From Schizochytrium sp. TIO01 (Eukaryota; Protista; Bigyra: Labyrinthulomycetes), in contig SMSO01000035.1 of NCBI GenBank assembly GCA_004764695.1, positions 2,868,362 through 2,921,152 of the forward strand: 52,791 nt of DNA, written 5' to 3'. Both the position numbers and the translations under genes were made by a program. Position 1 is the first letter of the stretch, and the number at the start of each line of letters is the position of its first letter. Below are positions 17,655 to 32,999 of this stretch, piece by piece. The notes under the pieces were generated by a model, which saw nothing but the letters and a program-made list of their open reading frames with translations, was not told where the DNA came from and ran no database searches.

Positions 17655-20600
17655 TTAAGTGATGCTAGCGACCGGGTTTTTCTCCAGCATCTCACAAAGT
17701 GAGCCAGGAGGTACGCCATAAAGACTGTTGATGTGATTGAATGATACATTACCTACTACATATTGCACATTACATTAGATGCATGCATCCAATCATGGAC
17801 GTGAGCGATCTAGGTTGGCTTTCATGATTTTCTCATTGTTGAGTTGTCATTTTGCCTTTTGTTGGATGTATTCTCAATCAATCAATCAATCCAACAAAAA
17901 GGCAGTTGTATAAACTTGCAAAACAACACACCAACCAATCAAACAAGCAAGAAAGCATCATGTATAAACAAGTGCACGAGCTACTGCTTAGACGACTTAC
18001 TTAATATTGCAGAGTAGCTTGTGCTGTGAAGCGTGCAGAGGTAGTCTGACAAGGATGGCGAACTCAGGAGAAAGAGAAAGAGGATGATATATGAGTTATT
18101 GGAATTTCGGGCCTGGATCTAGGTAGAGATGAATGCATGATGTTAGTCCAAGATACAACAGAAGGTGTCGGACATGAGAGCTTGGTTAGGTTGGGCAGTA
18201 GTTGTATATTACTTCACTACTGAAGGATTGTCAGCGACCGATTTTCTTCCAGCGCCGCAACCAATGCCTCGTTGCCCTCATCGCCGATTCTGTTGCCATA
18301 AAGACTGTTGATTTAATTGAATGATGGCAAGCAATATATGACACATTACACATTACATCACATTAGATGCATGCATCCAAGCATGGACGTGAGTGATCTA
18401 GGTTAGCTTTCATGATATTCTCATTGTTGAGTTGTCATTTTGCTCTTTTTGGGATGCATGCTCAATCAATCAATCAATCCAACCAAAAGTTAATTATATA
18501 AAGTTGCAAAACAACACCCCAACCAATCAAACAAGCAACAAAGCCTCATGTACCAACAAGTCCACGAGCCATGTTTAGACAACCTACTGAAGTGTTGTCA
18601 GCGACTGATTCTCTTTCAGTGCCATAGCCAATGCCTCGGCGCCCTCGTCGCCGATACTGTTCCTACCAAGACTGTTCATTTGATTGAATGATGCCAACCA
18701 ATACATTACACATTACATTAGATGTATGCACGCATGCATGGACGTGAGTGATCTAGATTGGCTTTCAGGATTCCCTTTTTGTTGTGTTGTCATTTTGCTC
18801 TTTGTTTGATGCATATTCAATAAATCAATCGATCAATCAATCTACCAAACCACGAAAGCAGCAAATAGCCAGTTATAGAAACTTGCAAAACAACACCGAA
18901 CCAAAACACGACCTTATAAAACAATACACCAACTAATCAAACAAGCAATCAAGCCTCATGTACAAACAAGTCCACAAGCAACTGCATAGACAACTTACTT
19001 TAGTAATGTCAGCGATCGGTTCTCTTTCAACGCTGCAGCGATTGCCTTGGTCCCGTCCTCGCAGATACTATTATCCTCAAGACTATTAATGAGATTGAAT
19101 GGCGGCAAGCAATATATTACACATTGCACATTACATTACATTGCATTAAATGCATGCATGGACGTGAGTAATCTAGGTTGACTTTCAGGATTTCCTCTTG
19201 GTTGTGTTGTCATTTTGCTCTTTTTTGGATGCACACTCCCTCACTCAATCAATCACTCGGTCAATCAACTCAACATATAGGCAGTTATATAAACATGGAA
19301 AAAACACTGTCCAAACCACCCCCATGCAAAATACCACACCAAGCAAGCAAGATTCATTGACAAACAAGTCTACGAGCTACTGCTTAGACAACTTACTCTA
19401 GTGATGTCAGCGACCGATTTTCTTTCAGCGCCGCAGCCACTGCCTTGGCGCCCTTCTCGGTGATAACATTGCTAGAAAGACTGTTAATTTGGTTGAGTGA
19501 TAGCAAGCAATACATTACATTACATGCATATATGCATGCACGGACGTGAGTGATCTAGGTTGGCTTTCTGGATTTCCTCTTGGTCATGTTGTCACTTGGC
19601 TCTTTCTTTGATGCATACTCAATCAATCAATCCAACAAATAAACAGCTGCATATACTTGAGAAACAACCCCCCCCCGGTCCAAAAGAACATCAACTAAGC
19701 AAACAAGAAAGCCTAATGTGCAAACAAGTCCACGAGCTACTGCTTAGACGACTTACTCAAGGAATGTCAGTGACCGGTTCTCTTTCAGCGCCGCAGACAA
19801 TGCCTTGGCGCCCTCTTGGGTGATCCAATTCCTACCAAGACTGTTGATTTGATTGGATGATGTCAAGCAATATATTACACATTACACATTACACATTACA
19901 TTACAAATGTATGCATGTATACATGAACGTGAGTGATCTAGGTGGCTTTCAGAATTTCCTCATTGCTGTGTTGTCATTTTGCTCTTTCTTGGATGCATAC
20001 TCATCAATCAAACAAACTCTGTCGATTCAACAAATAAGCAGTTATATAGACTTGCAAAACAACACACCAACAGATCAAACAAACAAGGAGGTCTCATGTA
20101 CAAGCAAGTCCACGAGCTACTCCTCAGACGACTTACGATAGTCCTGTCAGCGACCGGTTCTCTTTCAGCGCTGCACCCACTGCCTCAGCGCCCTCGTCGT
20201 TGATCTTGTTCTCCCCAAGACTGTTGATCCGATTGAATGATGGCAAGCAATACATAACACATTACATTGCATTAGATACATGCAACCAAGCATGCACGTG
20301 AGTGATCCATGTTGGCTTCAAAGTTTCACCGTTGTTGTGTTGTTGTTTTGCTCTTTGCCAGATGTATATTCAACCAATCTAATAAGTAGTTGTATAGACT
20401 CGCAAAACAACGTACCAACCAAGCAAACGAGCAAGCCTCATGTACAAATAAGTCCAGGAGCTACTGCTTAAACGACTTACTCAAGGAATGTCAGAGACCG
20501 GTTCTCTTTCAGCGCTGCAGCCAATGCCTTGGCACCTTCGTCGCCGATCTTGGTTCTTCGAAGACTGTTCATTTAATTAAATGATGGCAAACAATACATT

Positions 20601-25259: not shown

Positions 25260-26507
25260 TTTTCCCCTTTAATTAATTTACCCTAGCACTAAAAGAAAGC
25301 AACTCCACGGTTGATATCACAATATAAGACATATCAAAGATTAATTTTATGAAATAAAACCTACCCGAAGAGGATTAAAAGCAATGCAAGAAAGGCAATC
25401 AGGCATCTACTCTCGGTCAAAGATTCTCCACTTTTTGAAACTTTCCTTCCCTTCTTTCTGGCACACCTTTGGTCGCAGCCGCCCGTAGCTCTGATCGTTG
25501 AAAGCAACTCTTTGCTTTTTTCACATTGAAGCCGTGAAGCAAATATCCAACGACTCGACACATCTTTGAAATCCGAAAATTGTCGACTTGTTCTCCATTC
25601 TCTCCCAAGCTTGAGCTATATCAAGATTATTTTCTTTTACGCTCCTCGATGACACCGTTGCGAGTTTGTGTCGCTCCAAGACTTCATCAAAGGCAACAAA
25701 AGGATTCAATAAGCTCCCACCTCTTATCTCAAATAGACATCAATACAAGGATCTTTTCTTGCCTGCTATTCATTACACAATACGCCATGGCAATCAAAAT
25801 TCAACATCCTTCTTTTGCTTTACACACCAACTTAATTTCTTATATTTATTTAAATTAAAAGAAAAAAAAAGCTTGAAGAGTAGTTCTATGCGTTAGCTCT
25901 CTTCATCTGCACGACCATAAAGGGATGGAGTCCTTCCTCGTGTCGCCTCCTGCCTTGTTTTTGACCTAGACGAAGCACAAGGCCTCCTCGTCTTTCTTCA
26001 AGACTAGACTCCTCTTTTGCGCTCCCAGGATAAATTAGAAACGAAGTGAAAGCACCTTAAACAAAAGGGCAAAGGACCTTAACACAGGAAAGGAATAAAA
26101 GGGAATACCATGCCATCGCCAAAGCCGCAAAGCCGCAACACGAGGCAGCGCGCGCGCACGATATCCACGCACCCGCGACCTCTCGCGTGCCACACCCCTC
26201 CACGCGTTCGCTGTTCGTGGGCGAGACTTGGTCTACTGAGGCACTTGCGAGGCATCGCGAGGAGTCCGTCCGATCCTCCTTCCTTGCAGCTCAGAAGAAG
26301 GAGAAGGAGAAGAAGAAGAGAGAGCAGAAGTCTCCGTTCCTGATCAGCAGCGCGAGCGAAGACTCAAACTACAGACACTCTTTCTCTCTCTCTCTCTCTC
26401 TCTCTCTTTCGAGCGCCAAAGCAAAGCGAAGACAAAGACAAGCAAAGTCAATCAACGCGATTGATCAATCCATCCATCAAAGGCGAAACTCACTGCTGCA
26501 AAACACG

Positions 26508-27030
26508 ATGACTGTGGCAAAGAGCATTAAGGATATCAGAGAAGATACGACGGAGATTCGGTAAGTGCACCATGCAGAAGGGAGGAGACAGAAGAAGGAG
26601 GCATCGCGTCGTCGATGTGTTGTAGTAGTCAGCTTTGTAGAAGAAGAATAGTTCTGTACTAGTAGTGGCACTAATGAAGAAGTTGGAAATGGCATATACT
26701 TACTCTCACTTGTTCACAAACAAACAAACAAACACAGTCTTGATTGCAAGAGGCTTAGCTCGGAGTGCGCAAAGGCCGTCGCAAAGGCACTCGAGGGATG
26801 CAACAACCTTCAAACTTTAGAGTACGTTTGTGGAATCATCCACGAGGGAAAGCTATCGTAATAGTCAGGACCAAGCTTTTTCTTTCTTTCTTTTTAGTGC
26901 TTGGTGTTTGTAGTACTGCTGGTACACTACCTAAGTAGTTTACGTAGTTGGGTACGCAAAGAAAGGCAAAGAAGTCTTTTCTTTTTTACAAAGAGAAGAA
27001 GGAAATCTATATAATTTGATAGGCAGCAGA

Positions 27031-27063
<33 letters not shown>

Positions 27064-27473
27064 AGAAGAGCTGATTGCTTTTTATTGTGAGGGAAAACAA
27101 AACAAAACAGGATCAACTGACTGGACCTGTCTTTCCTGACAACGAATGAACAAAACAAACTTATTCATTTATACTCACAGTCTTGAGAGCAACAAGATTG
27201 GCTCAGAGGGCGCAAAGGCCGTCGCAAAGGCACTCGAGGGATGCAAGAACCTTCAAGAATTGTCGTACGTTTGTGGAATCATCCACGAGGGAAAGCTATC
27301 GTAATAGTCAGGACCAAGCTTTTTCTTTCTTTCTTTTTAGTGCTTGGTGTTTGTAGTACTGCTGGTACACTACCTAAGTAGTTTACGTAGTTGGGTACGC
27401 AAAGAAAGGCAAAGAAGTCTTTTCTTTTTTACAAAGAGAAGAAGGAAATCTATATAATTTGATAGGCAGCAGA

Positions 27474-27506
<33 letters not shown>

Positions 27507-30500
27507 AGAAGAGCTGATTGCTTTTTATTGTGAGGGAAAACAAAACAAAACAGGATCAACTGACTGGACCTGTCTTTCCTGACAACGAATGAACAAAACA
27601 AACTTATTCATTTATACTCACAGTCTTGAGTATAACAACATTGGCTCAGAGGGCGCAAAGGCCGTCGCAAAGGCACTCGAGGGATGCAAGAACCTGACTT
27701 ATCTGAAGTACGTTTGTGGAATCATCCACGAGGGAAAGCTATCGTAATAGTCAGGACCAAGCTTTTTCTTTCTTTCTTTTTAGTGCTTGGGGTTTGTAGT
27801 ACTGCTGGTACACTACCTAAGTAGTTTACGTAGTTGGGTACGCAAAGAAAGGCAAAGAAGTCTTTTCTTTTTTTACAAAGAGAAGAAGGAAATCTATATA
27901 ATTTGATAGGCAACAGCAGCAGCAGAAGAAGAGGTGATTGCTTTTTATTGTGAGGGAAAACAAAACAAAACAGGATCAACTGACTGGACCTGTCTTTCTT
28001 GACAACGAATGAACAAAACAAACTTATTCATGTATACTCACAGTCTTTACAAAAACAACATTGGCTCGAAGGGCGCAAAGGCCGTCGCAAAGGCACTCGA
28101 GGGATGCAAGAACCTGACTTATCTGAAGTACGTTTGTGGAATCATCCACGAGGGAAAGCTATCGTAATAGTCAGGACCAAGCTTTTTCTTTCTTTCTTTT
28201 TAGTGCTTGGGGTTTGTAGTACTGCTGGTACACTACCTAAGTAGTTTATGTAGTTGGGTACGCAAAGAAAGGCAAAGAAGTCTTTTCTTTTTTTACAAAG
28301 AGAAGAAGGAAATCTATATAATTTGATACGCAGCAGCAGCAGCAGAAGAAGAAGAGGTGATTGCTTTTTATTGTGAGGGAAAACAAAACAAAACAGGATC
28401 AACTGACTGGACCTGTCTTTCCTGACAACGAATGAACAAAACAAACTTATTCATTTATACTCACAGTCTTTTTGGCAACAACATTGGCTCGGGGGGCGCA
28501 AAGGCCGTCGCAAAGGCACTCGAGGGATGCAAGAACCTTCAAACTTTACAGTACGTTTGTGGAATCATCCACGAGGGAAAGCTATCGTAATAGTCAGGAC
28601 CAACCTTTTTCTTTCTTTCCTTTTAGTGGTACACTACTTAAGTTGTTTACGTAGTTGGGTACGCAAAGAAAGGCAAAGAAGTCTTTTCTTTTTTACAAAG
28701 AGAAGAAGGAAATCTATATAATTTGATAGGCAGCAGCAGCAGCAGCAGCAGAACAAGAGGTGATTGCTTTGTATTGTGAGGAAAAACAAAACAAAACAGG
28801 ATCAACTGACCGGAGCTGTCTTTCCTGACAACGAATGAACAAAAATGATTGATTTATACTCACAGTCTTTTTGGCAACAACATTGGCTCGGAGGGCGCAA
28901 AGGCCATCGCAAAGGCACTCGAGGGATGCAAGAACCTTCAAACTTTAGAGTACGTTTGTGGAATCATCCACGAGGGAAAGCTATCGTAATAGTCAGGACC
29001 AAGCTTTTTCTTTCTTTCTTTTGAGTGCTTGGTGTTTGTAGTACTGCTGGTACACTACCTAAGTAGTTTACGTAGTTGGGTACGCAAAGAAAGGCAAAGA
29101 AGTCTTTTCTTTTTTACAAAGAGAAGAAGGAAATCTATATAATTTGATAGGCAGCAGCAGCAGAAGAAGAAGAGGTGATTGCTTTTTATTGTGAGGAAAA
29201 ACAAAACAAAACAGGATCAACTGACTGGACCTGTCTTTCCTAACAACGAATGAACAAAACAAACTTATTCATTTATACTCACAGTCTTGAAAGCAACAAC
29301 ATTGGCGATGAGGGCGCAAAGGCCGTCGCAAAGGCACTCGAGGGATGCAAGAACCTGACTGGTCTGAAGTACGTTTGTGGAATCATCCACGAGGGAAAGC
29401 TATCGTAATAAGCAGGACCAAGCTTTTTCTTTCTTTCTTTTTGGTGCTTGGTGTTTGTAGTACTGCTGGTACACTACCTAAGTAGTTTACGTAATTGGGT
29501 ACGCAAAGAAAGGCAAAGAAGTCTTTTCTTTTTTACAAAGAGAAGAAGGAAATCTATATAATTTGATACGCAGCAGCAGCAGCAGAAGAAGAAGAGGTGA
29601 TTGCTTTTTATTGTGAGGAAAAACAAAACAAAACAGGATCAACTGACTGGACCTGCCTTTCCTGACAACGAATGAACAAAACAAACTTATTCATTTATAC
29701 TCACAGTCTTCGTTTCAACAACATTGGCGATGAGGGCGCAAAGGCCGTCGCAAAGTCTCTGCACAAAGCATGTCCTTCTGTTAGAATCTAGTAAGTTCCG
29801 TCCCCTCTGCTGCTATTCCCAGCTTGCGCAGAGCCTTGCCTTCGCTGGTTCTCTCCATGTCTCCATATTGACTTGCGAGGCCGTCTTTAGTTGCGTGCAT
29901 CGTTTTTCTAACAAGCGCTTTTATTCTCTTTCTTTTGTTCATTGATTTATCAAATGCAGCTATGACTGTTCTTCTAGAACTCCTAAAGAATTGTTCGAAA
30001 GAGTGTGTTCTCCTGGAGAGGACATTGCAGATTTCTCGTCAGAACTCGATTCCTATGCTTCCATAGAGGCTGCAGAAAGCGAGCCTTCTGCAGAGCCCAA
30101 GAACGAGCAAGATCGCGTTGAGGGCGCTGGGCCTGCTACTTTGGGTGGATCTGGGTAAGTTCATGCGGTCAGTCTTTGTTTGGGATCGTGTAATTATTCA
30201 TTCCGCGAATTGTGCTATTGAGATATAGGGGATCCTAACTTTTGCGTCTGCTTTTGTTGCTGCCTCAACATCATTTTGCTCGTTTGCTTACATCTTCTTG
30301 TTCGTCTCAGAGAACGGGCGGATGGAGCGAGCGTGAGTTTCGCTGATGTGGTGCAGCTTGCCAAGAAAGTCTCGGACTTGCGCGCGGACCGAGGCGGGGT
30401 CAGAGGAAATTCCCTGCAGACTGGGATTGCCCTGCTTGAGGAATTCGTTCGACCTGCGCTCCAGGGCTACTTTGGCCAAGTGAAGTTGCGACAGGTTTCC

Positions 30501-32999
30501 GCTGACATCAAGAACTCCAAACAGTGTCTTGACGCGCTACAAGACCAGATTCGTGCAAGCTCTGCAAATGGCTTGCCCAGCCTCATCGAAAAGCGAAACG
30601 CCGAACGATGTCGCCTGCATTCACTTTTGCAGGTTGTGTACCCCTGGGTTCGCGCCAACCTTTGCGAAAGTGATGAGAGTGCAGTGCGAGAATTCAAAGT
30701 GAGAGTTGAAAGTTTGGTACAAGATCTAAAGATCAACCTTGCACCAGTCGATGAAGAGACCAGCACAGATGACTTCAAACACTGTCAAGAACTCGTTGTT
30801 CAGGCTATCCAATGCGTGGAAGGGTACAAGAGGAGTGGAGAAGGCCAACTCAACAACATTGGTGAACGAAGCCAACAAGCTGTAAAACGCGTCATCTCTC
30901 GATTGTCTGAGCTCGAACTTGGTGATGGATTATGGGTTGCTCTGAGAACACCTGAGCAGGCCATGAAGCTAGAACCGGAGTTGTCTGAACTCGATAGTGC
31001 TCTTAAGGAAGAGATCGAAGCTCTACAAGGAGATACATTTCGTGCCCAATTGTCCAAAATACTTTGCGTGATAAGTTCAACATTTGCTCGATTTGAAGGA
31101 TACTCTGAAAGCACAGTGTTGAATGATGCAAGCAAGTGCACACCAACAGAGCTCTCTAATCTGTATGACTATGCAGTACTGGGTTTGAAAGAACCTTCTG
31201 TCTCAGATGTGGAAGCATTATACCAGAAACTTGACAAGTCGAGGATAGCCACAGAAATTTTGAAGAGAGCCAAAGAAGAACTCGAAATACAGGACATGGA
31301 TGAGGAAGATCAAGCATATTTTAGAAATCGTATCAAGAAACAAGAGCTCATTCTCTCTCAAGGCAACCCTATCGACCTTAGCAAAGCTTTTCGTCATAAG
31401 CTTGCTGAGACTCTGCAATACGCGCAGGAACATTATCCAGAGTTGCTGCAAGATAGAGCCTGGCTGGAAAGGCTTCACGTAAGTGCAGAGGGTGTTCTTG
31501 AAGTAGCATGTTCTGACCTTTGGTTGACGAATGTCACAGTTTCGGACTTCAAGCCTGTCGACGAGCCCCTTGCTTCCAGAAATGGCAAGAGAGTACAAAA
31601 GGTATTTGACAACTTTGGTAAAACTATGGTTCTCAAAGAGTTTCAGCTTGGGCATCCAAGTCAATCCAAAACCTTCTACAGACAAGTTGCCAATCTGGGC
31701 AAAGTGGTGTCTCAGCACGTGATACGTATCACTGGTGCTTTTGTTGATCTGGCACATGGAGTACCGCGTGGCTGTATTGTAATGCCTTTCTACGAGCAAG
31801 GTGACCTTGCCAAGTGGATTGATAGTCATCCTAACGAAGGCAAAGCAGCACGCGACCGACTTGCTGTGGGCCTGCTCATCGGCGTGGCGGATTTACATAC
31901 CCACGGCATTGTGCATTGTGACATCAAACCAGAAAACATTTTCCTCACAAGTAACGGGACACCATTGATCGGCGACTTTGACGGCATCAAGAATGCAGAC
32001 TACACTGCAACTTACACATCACTTCAGGCAACGCCACGGTACGTTGCCCCCGAGTTGCAGAATGGGCCTGTAGATAGGTTTGAAACAGCGATGGACATGT
32101 ACTCTGTAGGCATAAGCTTAAAGGAGCTGTATCCTACTGAGCGAACCGCTGCAATGCAGGCACTTATCGATGCTCTTACCGCGACAGACCCTAGTCAACG
32201 TCCAACCGCTTGTCAAGCACTCCAACATGAAACTTTTGGACCTCCTAAAATCCCTCTCAAGGAATGTCTTGTATGTTTGGAGGAGCATCTGCTTTCCGAG
32301 GGCACGAGCTGCGAGGAGGGAGACTTCCTTTGCAGAGACTGTATCGAGGCTACAGTGAAAGCGGCGGCACAACCACTTGCTGACGTAAGAGTCGATGCTG
32401 ATGGAACGATGGCGTGCATGAAACCTGAATGTGATGGAAGGATATCAGGTCAAGAAATCACCCGTCTTGCACCAACTGCCTTGAATCATCTGTTGTTGAT
32501 TGCGAAGATGAAGGCAGAAAGTGAGGCAGCAGTTTGGGCTGAGAAGGAGATCCAAAGGCGCATAGCGGAAGTTTTACGTGCAGAAGAACAAAATAGTGAC
32601 GCACGGCGGCATTTACTACATATTCAAGAGAACATCTTGAGCACATGTTGTCCGAACTGTAAGGCTTATGTACACGACTTTGACGGTTGCTGCGCTGTAA
32701 AATGTGGTAATAATGCTTGTGGTCATCACTATTGCGCTTGGTGTCTTGAGTACGGTTCCCAGGATACAGATGAATGTCATGCTCATGTGAGAACCTGCTC
32801 AAGAAGACTTGGGCAAGATCTACATTTCGCTGATTCATTCGAGCAGGTTCTTGAGGCATGGCGGCTACTACGCGCAGAACGTCTACGCGAGTACTGGAAT
32901 GCGAATATTAGAGACAGAAATCTCCAGCATGCTCTCGAACAGCTACTTGTGCCTCTGCTAACGCCAGACATCGTTGGTCCAGAATTTAAACTGTGTTAA
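26508..32999 (+). CDS. LRR gene B: 8xLRR - helical domain - protein kinase - RING1/Rcat (RBR-like E3), about 1202 aa, 11 exons
   Basis: Exons: 26508-26560 (MTVAKSIKDIREDTTEI); 84-nt LRR exons 26738-26821, 27181-27264, 27624-27707, 28044-28127, 28467-28550, 28866-28949, 29285-29368 and 29707-29790; 29960-30154; 30311-32999. All junctions are GT-AG and phase 2, total 3609 nt, in frame with the 907-aa ORF. Kinase motifs VLKEF, HCDIKPEN, DFDG, YVAPE and DMYSVG. Zinc fingers CLVC...C...CRDC...CMKPEC and CPNC...DGCCAVKC...CGHHYCAWC. Confidence 0.88.

Follow-up and report, generated by a model that had tools for sequence, protein, structure and literature searches.

The window analysed here, a stretch of 52,791 nucleotides (nt) from the thraustochytrid Schizochytrium sp. 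TIO01 (assembly GCA_004764695.1, contig SMSO01000035.1, positions 2,868,362 to 2,921,152; scaffold C34 in our coordinates), harbours two neighbouring genes which consist largely of exons encoding leucine-rich repeats (LRRs). These genes, referred to as A and B, are divergently transcribed, sit between two ribosomal DNA (rDNA) units with a 5S rRNA gene (25142-25259, plus strand; Rfam, 88 bits) between them, and lie 17.6-33 kb from a chromosome end. An original prediction, made from the sequence alone, had placed their start codons at 24682 on the minus and at 26508 on the plus strand, 1.8 kb apart. Re-deriving both models from the sequence and with scripts gave the same arrangement, with 1826 bp between the two ATGs.

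Exon structure of the two LRR genes

Gene B (plus strand) begins with a leader exon of 53 nt (26508-26560, ATG at 26508) that ends in phase 2 before a GTAAGT donor. It is followed by eight exons of exactly 84 nt within 26738-29790 (starts at 26738, 27181, 27624, 28044, 28467, 28866, 29285 and 29707), separated by near-identical introns of 315-359 nt, with a repeat unit of about 420 bp (TRF, scripts and Pfam). A linker exon of 195 nt (29960-30154, boundaries set by script), acidic and of low complexity, leads to a tail exon of 2689 nt (30311-32999; scripts, Pfam, profiles and AF2 model), whose stop codon occupies 32997-32999. The model comprises 1202 codons and a single terminal stop, and gene B is an intact gene for a protein of 1202 residues. 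Because the tail has no hydrophobic segment and the leader no evident signal peptide, this protein is probably cytosolic.

Gene A (minus strand) starts with a leader exon of 65 nt (24618-24682, ATG at 24682; sequence and boundary scripts), which also ends in phase 2. Its array within 18221-24355 holds 17 exons of 84 nt, starting at 24355, 23964, 23593, 23219, 22832, 22471, 22090, 21705, 21329, 20951, 20564, 20220, 19840, 19480, 19082, 18671 and 18304, with introns of 260-327 nt and a unit of about 381 bp (TRF, scripts and Pfam). Each exon is preceded by (C/T)AG and followed by GTA(A/G)G, and the frame runs through 497 codons plus a split codon with no internal stop. A frame-continuity script that carries the split codon across each intron found every junction of both models in phase 2. 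The architecture foreseen in the original prediction, a short phase-2 leader followed by 17 or 8 symmetric exons of 84 nt, is thus found in 25 of 25 exons.

The claim that each exon encodes one LRR of 28 residues of the RI type was borne out as well. Searched singly, 23 of the 25 exons match the Pfam profile LRR_6 (PF13516; best E 7.9e-6), and a profile built from all 25 exon translations (27 columns) matches RSP15 (1.3e-10), NOD2 (5irm, 1.1e-9) and LRRC34 in the PDB. The exon consensus, LxxNxIGxEGAKAVAAALKENRSLTxL, together with the LRR_6 matches conforms to the pattern of RI/NLR-type repeats (28-29 residues, LxxLxLxxNxIGxxGAxxLAxxLxxNxx). In comparisons of adjacent units we counted no indel in the exons, while 47 (A) and 4.8 (B) would be expected at the indel rate of adjacent introns (145 gap openings in 4145 aligned nt for A and 19 in 1986 for B). 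The constant exon length is therefore not due to chance (Poisson P = 4e-21 for A and 0.008 for B).

The exons of A and B share on average 54% and at most 65.5% of their nucleotides, and scaffold residues differ consistently between the two genes (KENRSLT vs EGCKNLQ in the comparison of A with B). The introns of the two genes are unrelated, as had been proposed, with a best blastn E value of 0.08.

Gene A had been described as encoding LRRs only. This is true for the frame of the present copy but not as a design, because the frame ends in a solo long terminal repeat (LTR). The latter (18005-18219, minus strand, target-site duplication TTCAG/TTAAG; sequence comparison) is inserted at the donor of exon 17 and provides the G-TAG, so that the frame reads CAG TAG. 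Taking the solo LTR out in silico joins ...CTTCA to GTAAGTCG, which is a normal exon end followed by a donor. The 215 nt past exon 17 belong to a repeat dispersed through the genome (at least 195 candidate copies), and the sequence is the same as in both LTRs of a copia-like retroelement in the window. This element (14231-17446, minus strand; LTRs at 14231-14439 and 17240-17446, target-site duplication GGTAC, RVT_2 open reading frame (ORF) at 14453-17083) cuts the distal end of the A array. Between the two insertions lies a decayed exon 18 (17657-17726, minus strand, 70 nt), recognised by sequence, which has lost its donor and whose adjoining intron is homologous to A-type introns. From the solo LTR and the decayed exon it follows that the LRR-only state of this copy is a truncation; gene A as it stands is either a gene with an LRR-only product or a pseudogene, its 3' end having been cut by retroelement insertions. 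Elsewhere in the genome, a COR domain is located 4-8 kb downstream of three A-type leaders and on their strand, so that some A-type genes are probably LRR-ROCO genes. The same whole-genome search with COR-A gave no match within the window (C34:2868362-2921152).

Divergence along the gene A array is polarised. Its eight most similar intron pairs (3.4-8.8% divergence) are all found in units 1-7 next to the ATG, and the distal units are more diverged, ending in the decayed exon. An A-type array of the next unit, 4.9 to 10 kb beyond the end of the window, has at least twelve exons, two of which measure 85 nt (an extra C in GCGGCGCTG) and break the frame. It also contains two duplicated adjacent exon pairs (LYGTQ twice, near-identical, and LYSNY twice, identical). 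These oddities represent either decay or indel errors of long reads. The copia-like element itself is 3.2 kb long and encodes RVT_2 and an RNase H-like region in one ORF of 877 residues, with no obvious integrase or protease. Within this ORF a 51-bp tandem repeat (16346-16654, six copies) encodes a peptide repeat of 17 residues (HNDRESSSEHASHP...). An inverted LTR fragment is found at 12888-13014, and the LTR family (at least 195 candidate copies) is spread across chromosome interiors.

Tail domains and paralogues of gene B, and splicing in the LRR gene families

The tail of gene B (895 residues, numbered from 30312) comprises a helical region (about 1-400), a protein kinase (430-607+) and, at about 650-895, a RING1-like domain, a coiled coil and an Rcat-like domain. 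Both outputs named in the original prediction, a kinase and an RBR-like module, were thus recovered. Residues 430-607 match Pkinase (PF00069) at 1e-28 in Pfam. With VLKEF including the beta-3 lysine at 440, HCDIKPEN at 535, DFD at 555 and APE at 579, the profile and the catalytic motifs agree with a predicted kinase of the Ser/Thr type. The Pfam scan of the tail gave the kinase alone, so that no ROC-COR output of the kind known from Ectocarpus ROCO proteins was seen, and neither NACHT nor NB-ARC was matched in the tail or its helical region, which sets gene B apart from NLR/STAND proteins.

The last 256 residues have no match in Pfam. In an exhaustive HMMER search we found 1633 homologues of this C-terminal module, 359 of them at E <= 1e-10, on proteins of 150-3200 residues with many architectures. 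In an alignment of 26 homologues the cysteines are invariant in the two blocks CxxC..C...HFxCxxC..C....C and CPxC...GC...C..C.C.FCAWC. The profile made from these 26 sequences matches the PDB entries of RNF216 (2.4e-6), parkin (1.4e-5), CUL9 (1.7e-4), ARIH2 (2.3e-4) and ARIH1. The first block (CxxC...C...HFxCxxC...C....C) is aligned to RING1 of RNF216 and also of parkin and ARIH1, whereas the segment CPNC...DGCCAVKC...CGHHYCAWC, with the G-C-x3-x-C arrangement of Rcat domains, aligns to the Rcat of parkin; the CUL9 and ARIH2 matches cover the same segment. The position of the putative catalytic cysteine of Rcat is conserved. On the basis of these profile matches the label RBR-like seems justified for RING1 and Rcat.

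Among known RBR E3 ligases, RNF216/TRIAD3 (PDB 7m4m) is the closest, followed by parkin and ARIH1/2. Like these, the module has an alignable RING1 and a CPxC...GC(x3)xC...FCAWC segment that aligns to Rcat (RING2). It differs in that no IBR was detected, in that a predicted coiled coil of about 70 residues joins the two zinc modules, and in its fusion to a kinase and an LRR domain. The module (32229-32996, plus strand) is covered by no Pfam family. It may represent an undescribed, IBR-less branch of RBR-type ligases.

Several results count against this domain reading of the tail as a whole. As a single sequence the module reaches only the Rcat of parkin in the PDB, at E 0.5, which is weak, and between RING1 and Rcat no IBR domain was matched significantly in Pfam (IBR_2, E 3.1). 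For the helical domain the AF2 model is confident (tail about 1-400, pLDDT 80). Nevertheless, no PDB entry reached E <= 0.001 in Foldseek, and a wide VIA-align search reached at most Z 8.5 with generic helical bundles, below the level that is meaningful for helical proteins. Neither Pfam (nothing credible) nor the ESM Atlas (no usable match) assigned the region of tail residues 1-430.

Since each DNA search scored no more than 40 candidates, all lists of genomic copies given here are lower bounds. The gene B tail is present in the genome in at least 51 copies, most of them intact, with 60-100% identity. Over 300 pairs of tails, the proportions of differing synonymous (pS) and nonsynonymous (pN) sites are 0.165 and 0.055. 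The ratio of 0.33 indicates purifying selection, and the tails therefore belong to working genes. In the public protein collections only a few Logan homologues were found (30-57% identity). Taken together, the LRR genes number at least 51 of the LRR-kinase-RBR kind, next to up to about 80 candidates of the A type.

In contrast to the conserved tail, the LRR exons vary, and nearly all of this variation falls on six of the 28 LRR positions, namely 1 (the split codon), 3, 4, 6, 9 and 27, which correspond to the x residues of LxxLxLxxN and the loop after it and form the predicted binding (concave) face. Within gene B diversity is 0.47 at the hypervariable positions, 0.087 in the scaffold and 0.026 in the introns; within gene A the corresponding values are 0.53, 0.13 and 0.15-0.21. 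In the last two LRR exons of 26 B paralogues the hypervariable codons show a pN of 0.45-0.54, compared to a scaffold pS of 0.09-0.125, a scaffold pN of 0.02-0.04 and an intron divergence of 0.048. Relative to the introns, variation in the binding-face codons is thus about 18-fold higher in gene B and about 2.5 to 4-fold higher in gene A. This excess at the concave face, as described for the Ectocarpus ROCO proteins, is read from the diversity figures, in which the binding-face codons carry an apparently strong signature of diversification. The introns after exons 1 and 2 of gene B are identical across 359 nt, and the scaffold NIG(S/D)EGAKAVAKALEGCKNL is almost invariant among the B paralogues. 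Since even scaffold sites diverge more than introns (0.087 vs 0.026), the B introns are probably homogenised, and the binding-face codons would be kept different. The distance between leader and tail in B paralogues ranges from 971 to 9822 bp, which we estimate to correspond to about 2 to 23 cassettes, and one paralogue has two identical cassettes side by side.

For the expression of these genes, contigs from three RNA-like runs were aligned with positions 22350-28349, together with those of a single DNA-like run; the label RNA is a guess. Exon-exon joints with CT..AC ends at the predicted boundaries are present in the RNA-like runs, whereas the DNA-like run has none of the listed joints. One such joint, from 22824 to 23136 with 8 replaced letters, corresponds to exactly one intron of 303 nt. 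Loose contig ends at 24272 (end of exon 1) and 24618-24619 (end of the leader) run into the TCTT... exon starts of paralogues. These data are short contigs of a highly repeated family, none of them unique to this copy, which counts against using them for the locus itself. The conclusions consequently apply to the family: splicing is shown for the A family, and for B there is a coverage pattern alone, in which contig depth suggests that only exons are covered, depth ratios being unable to rank the parts of a gene. Long skips such as that from 22832 to 24275 had been considered as exon skipping and were rejected, as identical 3' scaffolds of different exons and contigs of paralogues explain them.

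The 1240-residue protein of a complete transcript in MMETSP0960 contains LRR_6, Pkinase and the C-terminal module known from gene B. Residues 328-1240 of this protein are 99% identical to a chromosome-internal paralogue of the genome studied here (C13:1153892-1156630). The LRR-kinase-module architecture is therefore expressed in this species or a very close relative. The header of MMETSP0960 gives TAXON_ID=87120, which at NCBI is the fungus Rhizopogon burlinghamii; Aurantiochytrium limacinum is 87102, and the entry looks like a transposition of digits.

Identity of the arrays with chromosome-end spacers

For A. limacinum a preprint (10.1101/2023.06.15.545109) describes chromosome ends at which rDNA is transcribed toward the telomere, 5S genes are transcribed away from it, and tandem repeats called LORE-TEARS hold fixed positions at almost all ends. 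Units of about 366 bp (Group 2) are placed near the telomere and units of about 406 bp (Group 1) past the 28S gene; Group 0, with about 9 copies of about 385 bp, lies in the interval from the 18S to the nearest 5S gene, and Group 5, with about 5 copies of about 421 bp, in the interval from one 5S gene to the next. The preprint treats these repeats as spacers without similarity to GenBank, and the words LRR, leucine and kinase are absent from it. In the window, repeats of 372, 412, 381 and 420 bp occupy the places of Groups 2, 1, 0 and 5, with TRF periods of 378-386 for A and 419-420 for B. The arrays of genes A and B are LORE-TEARS Groups 0 and 5, the match being one of unit size and position and not of repeat sequence. 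Unit lengths, placement relative to 18S and 5S, and the orientation of rDNA toward and 5S away from the telomere are the same; the difference is that here each unit is an 84-nt LRR exon plus an intron of a protein-coding gene. Among the papers searched, no other uses the term LORE-TEARS, and none ties thraustochytrids, LRRs and subtelomeres together.

The features around the two genes fit this placement. The window opens with a telomere repeat, (TTACCTAACC)n, on the C-rich strand (1-113, plus strand; left chromosome end), which consists of 11 copies of the 10-mer TTACCTAACC (TRF). It is preceded by a gap of Ns and an opposite-facing copy of the telomere repeat on the same scaffold. Position 1 is therefore a real left chromosome end inside the scaffold, and the locus is subtelomeric, as originally proposed. 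A 372-bp satellite (413-3490, unstranded; TRF) matches Group 2 of the preprint (10.1101/2023.06.15.545109) in unit size and position. The first rDNA unit (6434-11951, minus strand; 28S, 5.8S and 18S; Rfam) is transcribed toward the telomere. A second 5S gene (39510-39628, plus strand; Rfam) closes the 5S - Group 5 - 5S interval of the preprint, and the second rDNA unit (46829-52352, minus strand; Rfam) lies near the end of the window. Rfam further finds two tRNA genes, and the next A-5S-B block is situated past the window end (C34:2932603-2934582).

Scaffold C34 evidently fuses two chromosome ends: a G-strand telomere (1650-1779 of C34:2862362-2868561) is followed by an N run of 3.9 kb and by the C-strand telomere of the window. 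Internal telomere pairs occur in several scaffolds, for example at 79.6 kb and 85.3 kb of C12. On the G strand the 10-mer reads as TTAGG alternating with TAAGG, and as a 40-mer it is found 176 times at contig ends genome-wide. The preprint (10.1101/2023.06.15.545109) reports plain TTAGG for A. limacinum, and the difference reflects either another strain or a more accurate reading of the repeat. The two rDNA units, 40 kb apart on one chromosome end (5985-12407 vs 46372-52791), share 96.8% identity over 6.4 kb (BLAST), which is more divergence than usual between neighbouring rDNA copies. Convergent with gene B lies an ORF of 607 residues (34726-36546, minus strand) with a weak C-terminal Pkinase match (2.6e-5, below the cut-off), which may be a piece of a larger spliced gene within the 5S-to-5S interval.

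We consider it likely that the locus is one copy of a standard chromosome-end module of an A. limacinum-like thraustochytrid and that its arrays are LRR gene cassettes. The module would run from the telomere through satellites to rDNA with an A-type LRR gene, directed toward the telomere, and to 5S with a B-type LRR gene, directed away from it. Two of the LORE-TEARS repeat types would then be cassettes, each an exon plus an intron, from two multicopy families of RI/NLR-type LRR genes that are unrelated to each other. In consequence, what has been published as anonymous spacer repeats, presumed to serve chromosome-end maintenance, would form the body of two large gene families, which would change the annotation and interpretation of every chromosome end of a model thraustochytrid.

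Possible function of the arrays, alternative explanations and related systems

As we picture it, the protein of gene B would combine eight LRRs as a sensor with a helical domain of about 400 residues, a Ser/Thr-type kinase and an RBR-like RING1-Rcat ubiquitin-ligase module. The rDNA/5S subtelomeric region is known for concerted evolution. Cassettes may be gained, lost and homogenised through unequal recombination and gene conversion between near-identical introns, a turnover that recombining rDNA subtelomeres would aid, while selection would hold about six codons per repeat diverse. In the proteins, the concave LRR face would recognise variable ligands, and phosphorylation and ubiquitylation would pass the signal on; the divergent orientation of A and B would follow from how the module is laid out. 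There is good support for reading the arrays as coding and diversifying. An immune or antiviral role is what we infer from this reading.

A further step is tentative and may well prove wrong: the rDNA/5S subtelomeres might act as a genome-wide diversity generator, with cassettes whose near-identical introns serve as recombination substrates, in well over a hundred RI-type LRR genes at nearly all chromosome ends. If this were true, one would expect a rapid turnover of repeat numbers and of binding-face codons from strain to strain, and perhaps from one clonal lineage to another. The system would then be a protist counterpart of contingency loci or of the fungal NLR repertoires of high internal conservation, possibly aimed at mirusvirus-like elements that integrate at the same chromosome ends.

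Several other explanations have to be weighed. The one that fares best, although we regard it as improbable, assumes no diversifying selection. The exons would be old and under purifying selection, conversion would homogenise introns and scaffold, and the proteins would have fixed housekeeping partners in a RanGAP-like or axonemal manner instead of recognising variable ligands. The exon profile indeed also matches the axonemal LRR proteins RSP15 and LRRC34, and the scaffold of B, more diverged than its introns, points to intron homogenisation. In addition, pS within the hypervariable codons (0.49-0.58) is as high as pN, which makes a classical dN/dS ratio uninterpretable at these codons. This weakens the diversifying reading, as the hypervariable codons could partly reflect old exon lineages together with intron homogenisation instead of ongoing positive selection. 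Fixed partners, on the other hand, are difficult to reconcile with more than 50 paralogues that differ in the hypervariable residues of the corresponding repeat and vary widely in how many repeats they have, and with variable sites that coincide exactly with the x residues of LxxLxLxxN and the following loop.

Head-to-head pairs of plant NLRs are represented by RGA4/RGA5 and RRS1/RPS4. The original prediction offered a pair of a sensor or decoy and a signalling protein, which would be a dedicated sensor/executor (or decoy/helper) unit co-regulated from a shared divergent promoter. There is some likeness, as divergent LRR genes lie less than 2 kb apart and one of them is without an obvious signalling domain, and both families are present in the RNA-like runs. 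The genome-wide search for such pairs, which had been suggested as a check, showed that the pairing does recur: with a 2-kb leader-to-leader interval we found about 15 full A-5S-B blocks. A divergent B leader is located within 6 kb of 12 of the 40 scored A leaders, always at 1546-1783 bp, so that this spacing of 1.55-1.78 kb is seen at about 12 to 15 sites. However, the pairing is not obligatory, since in the same interval search A-5S lacked B at 16 sites or more, and 5S-B or B lacked A at seven or more. What constantly accompanies A is the 5S gene, with B as an optional next module. The recurring arrangement stems from duplication of the whole block among chromosome ends, the 5S gene included, and is therefore not independent evidence for a pair. 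In addition, and unlike in the plant pairs, a gene transcribed by Pol III (5S) stands between the two promoters, no NB-ARC, NACHT or TIR is present, and the state of gene A without effector is the effect of a transposon insertion, this copy being truncated by an LTR. We thus hold a functional pair to be very unlikely, and no follow-up effort is needed on a pairing made by the layout.

It is even harder to believe that the repeats are primarily non-coding structural spacers for the maintenance of chromosome ends and rDNA, with a coding appearance that is incidental or vestigial. Their fixed positions relative to telomere, rDNA and 5S at almost all chromosome ends (10.1101/2023.06.15.545109), the frame-breaking 85-nt exons of the next A-type array and the disruption of gene A in this copy would agree with such a role. 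Against it stand zero indels in 25 exons where about 52 would be expected, the 23 of 25 exons matching LRR_6, the purifying selection on the tails (pN/pS 0.33), exon-exon joints confined to RNA-like runs and the complete homologous transcript in MMETSP0960. A structural role beside the coding role is possible.

The last proposal, a silent library of donor cassettes in A copied into B by gene conversion in the manner of lamprey VLRs, has next to no chance of being correct: both genes do have symmetric-phase 84-nt cassettes and lie close together in a recombinogenic subtelomere, but the low exon identity and the unrelated introns exclude A as cassette donor for B, scaffold residues differ consistently, no mosaic tracts were seen, and A starts with an ATG leader of its own, shows canonical splice sites and belongs to a family with spliced joints.

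Returning to the reading of the arrays as diversifying LRR genes, the closest known systems are the one-LRR-per-exon ROCO genes of Ectocarpus and the fungal NLRs with conserved internal repeats. In no paper we found are the three features of the present genes combined, which are one RI/NLR-type LRR per exon with introns much more conserved than the codons of the binding face, an LRR-helical-kinase-RBR-like protein and residence in the rDNA/5S subtelomere.

In the LRR-ROCO genes of Ectocarpus each exon of 72 nt encodes one LRR, exons are shuffled, and the products are candidate immune receptors (PMC3341825; PMC11378527), a role also proposed for the present genes. This brown algal case had been named in the original prediction; for its other parallel, vertebrate NLR genes with 84-nt exons, a literature search gave nothing of use. 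Both systems belong to stramenopiles and form families with one LRR per exon, symmetric phase and variable repeat number, in which concave-face residues are variable or positively selected (PMC3341825; PMC11378527). They differ in the repeats, which in Ectocarpus have 24 residues and 72-nt exons and here have 28 residues of RI/NLR-like type (LRR_6) in 84-nt phase-2 exons. The output domain is ROC-COR in Ectocarpus, compared to a kinase and a putative RBR-like E3 in B and none in A. A further difference is that here the introns are near-identical within an array and the genes reside in the rDNA/5S module of nearly every chromosome end.

Fungal NLRs whose repeats show high internal conservation carry WD40 repeats of the HET-E/D type, ANK or TPR (PMC4986451, PMC12222747). 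They share with the present genes near-identical tandem repeats with few hypervariable positions at the binding surface, a repeat number changed by unequal recombination and the status of intracellular candidate sensors of non-self. In the fungal genes, however, the repeats lie within one exon and accompany a NACHT or NB-ARC domain, whereas here the repeat is the exon, the homogenised part is mostly intron and no nucleotide-binding domain is present. Should the diversification reading hold, labyrinthulomycetes would join brown algae and fungi as organisms with recombination-driven repeat receptors, and these chromosome ends, at which giant and mirus-like viruses integrate, would offer a testable entry to protist innate immunity against such viruses.

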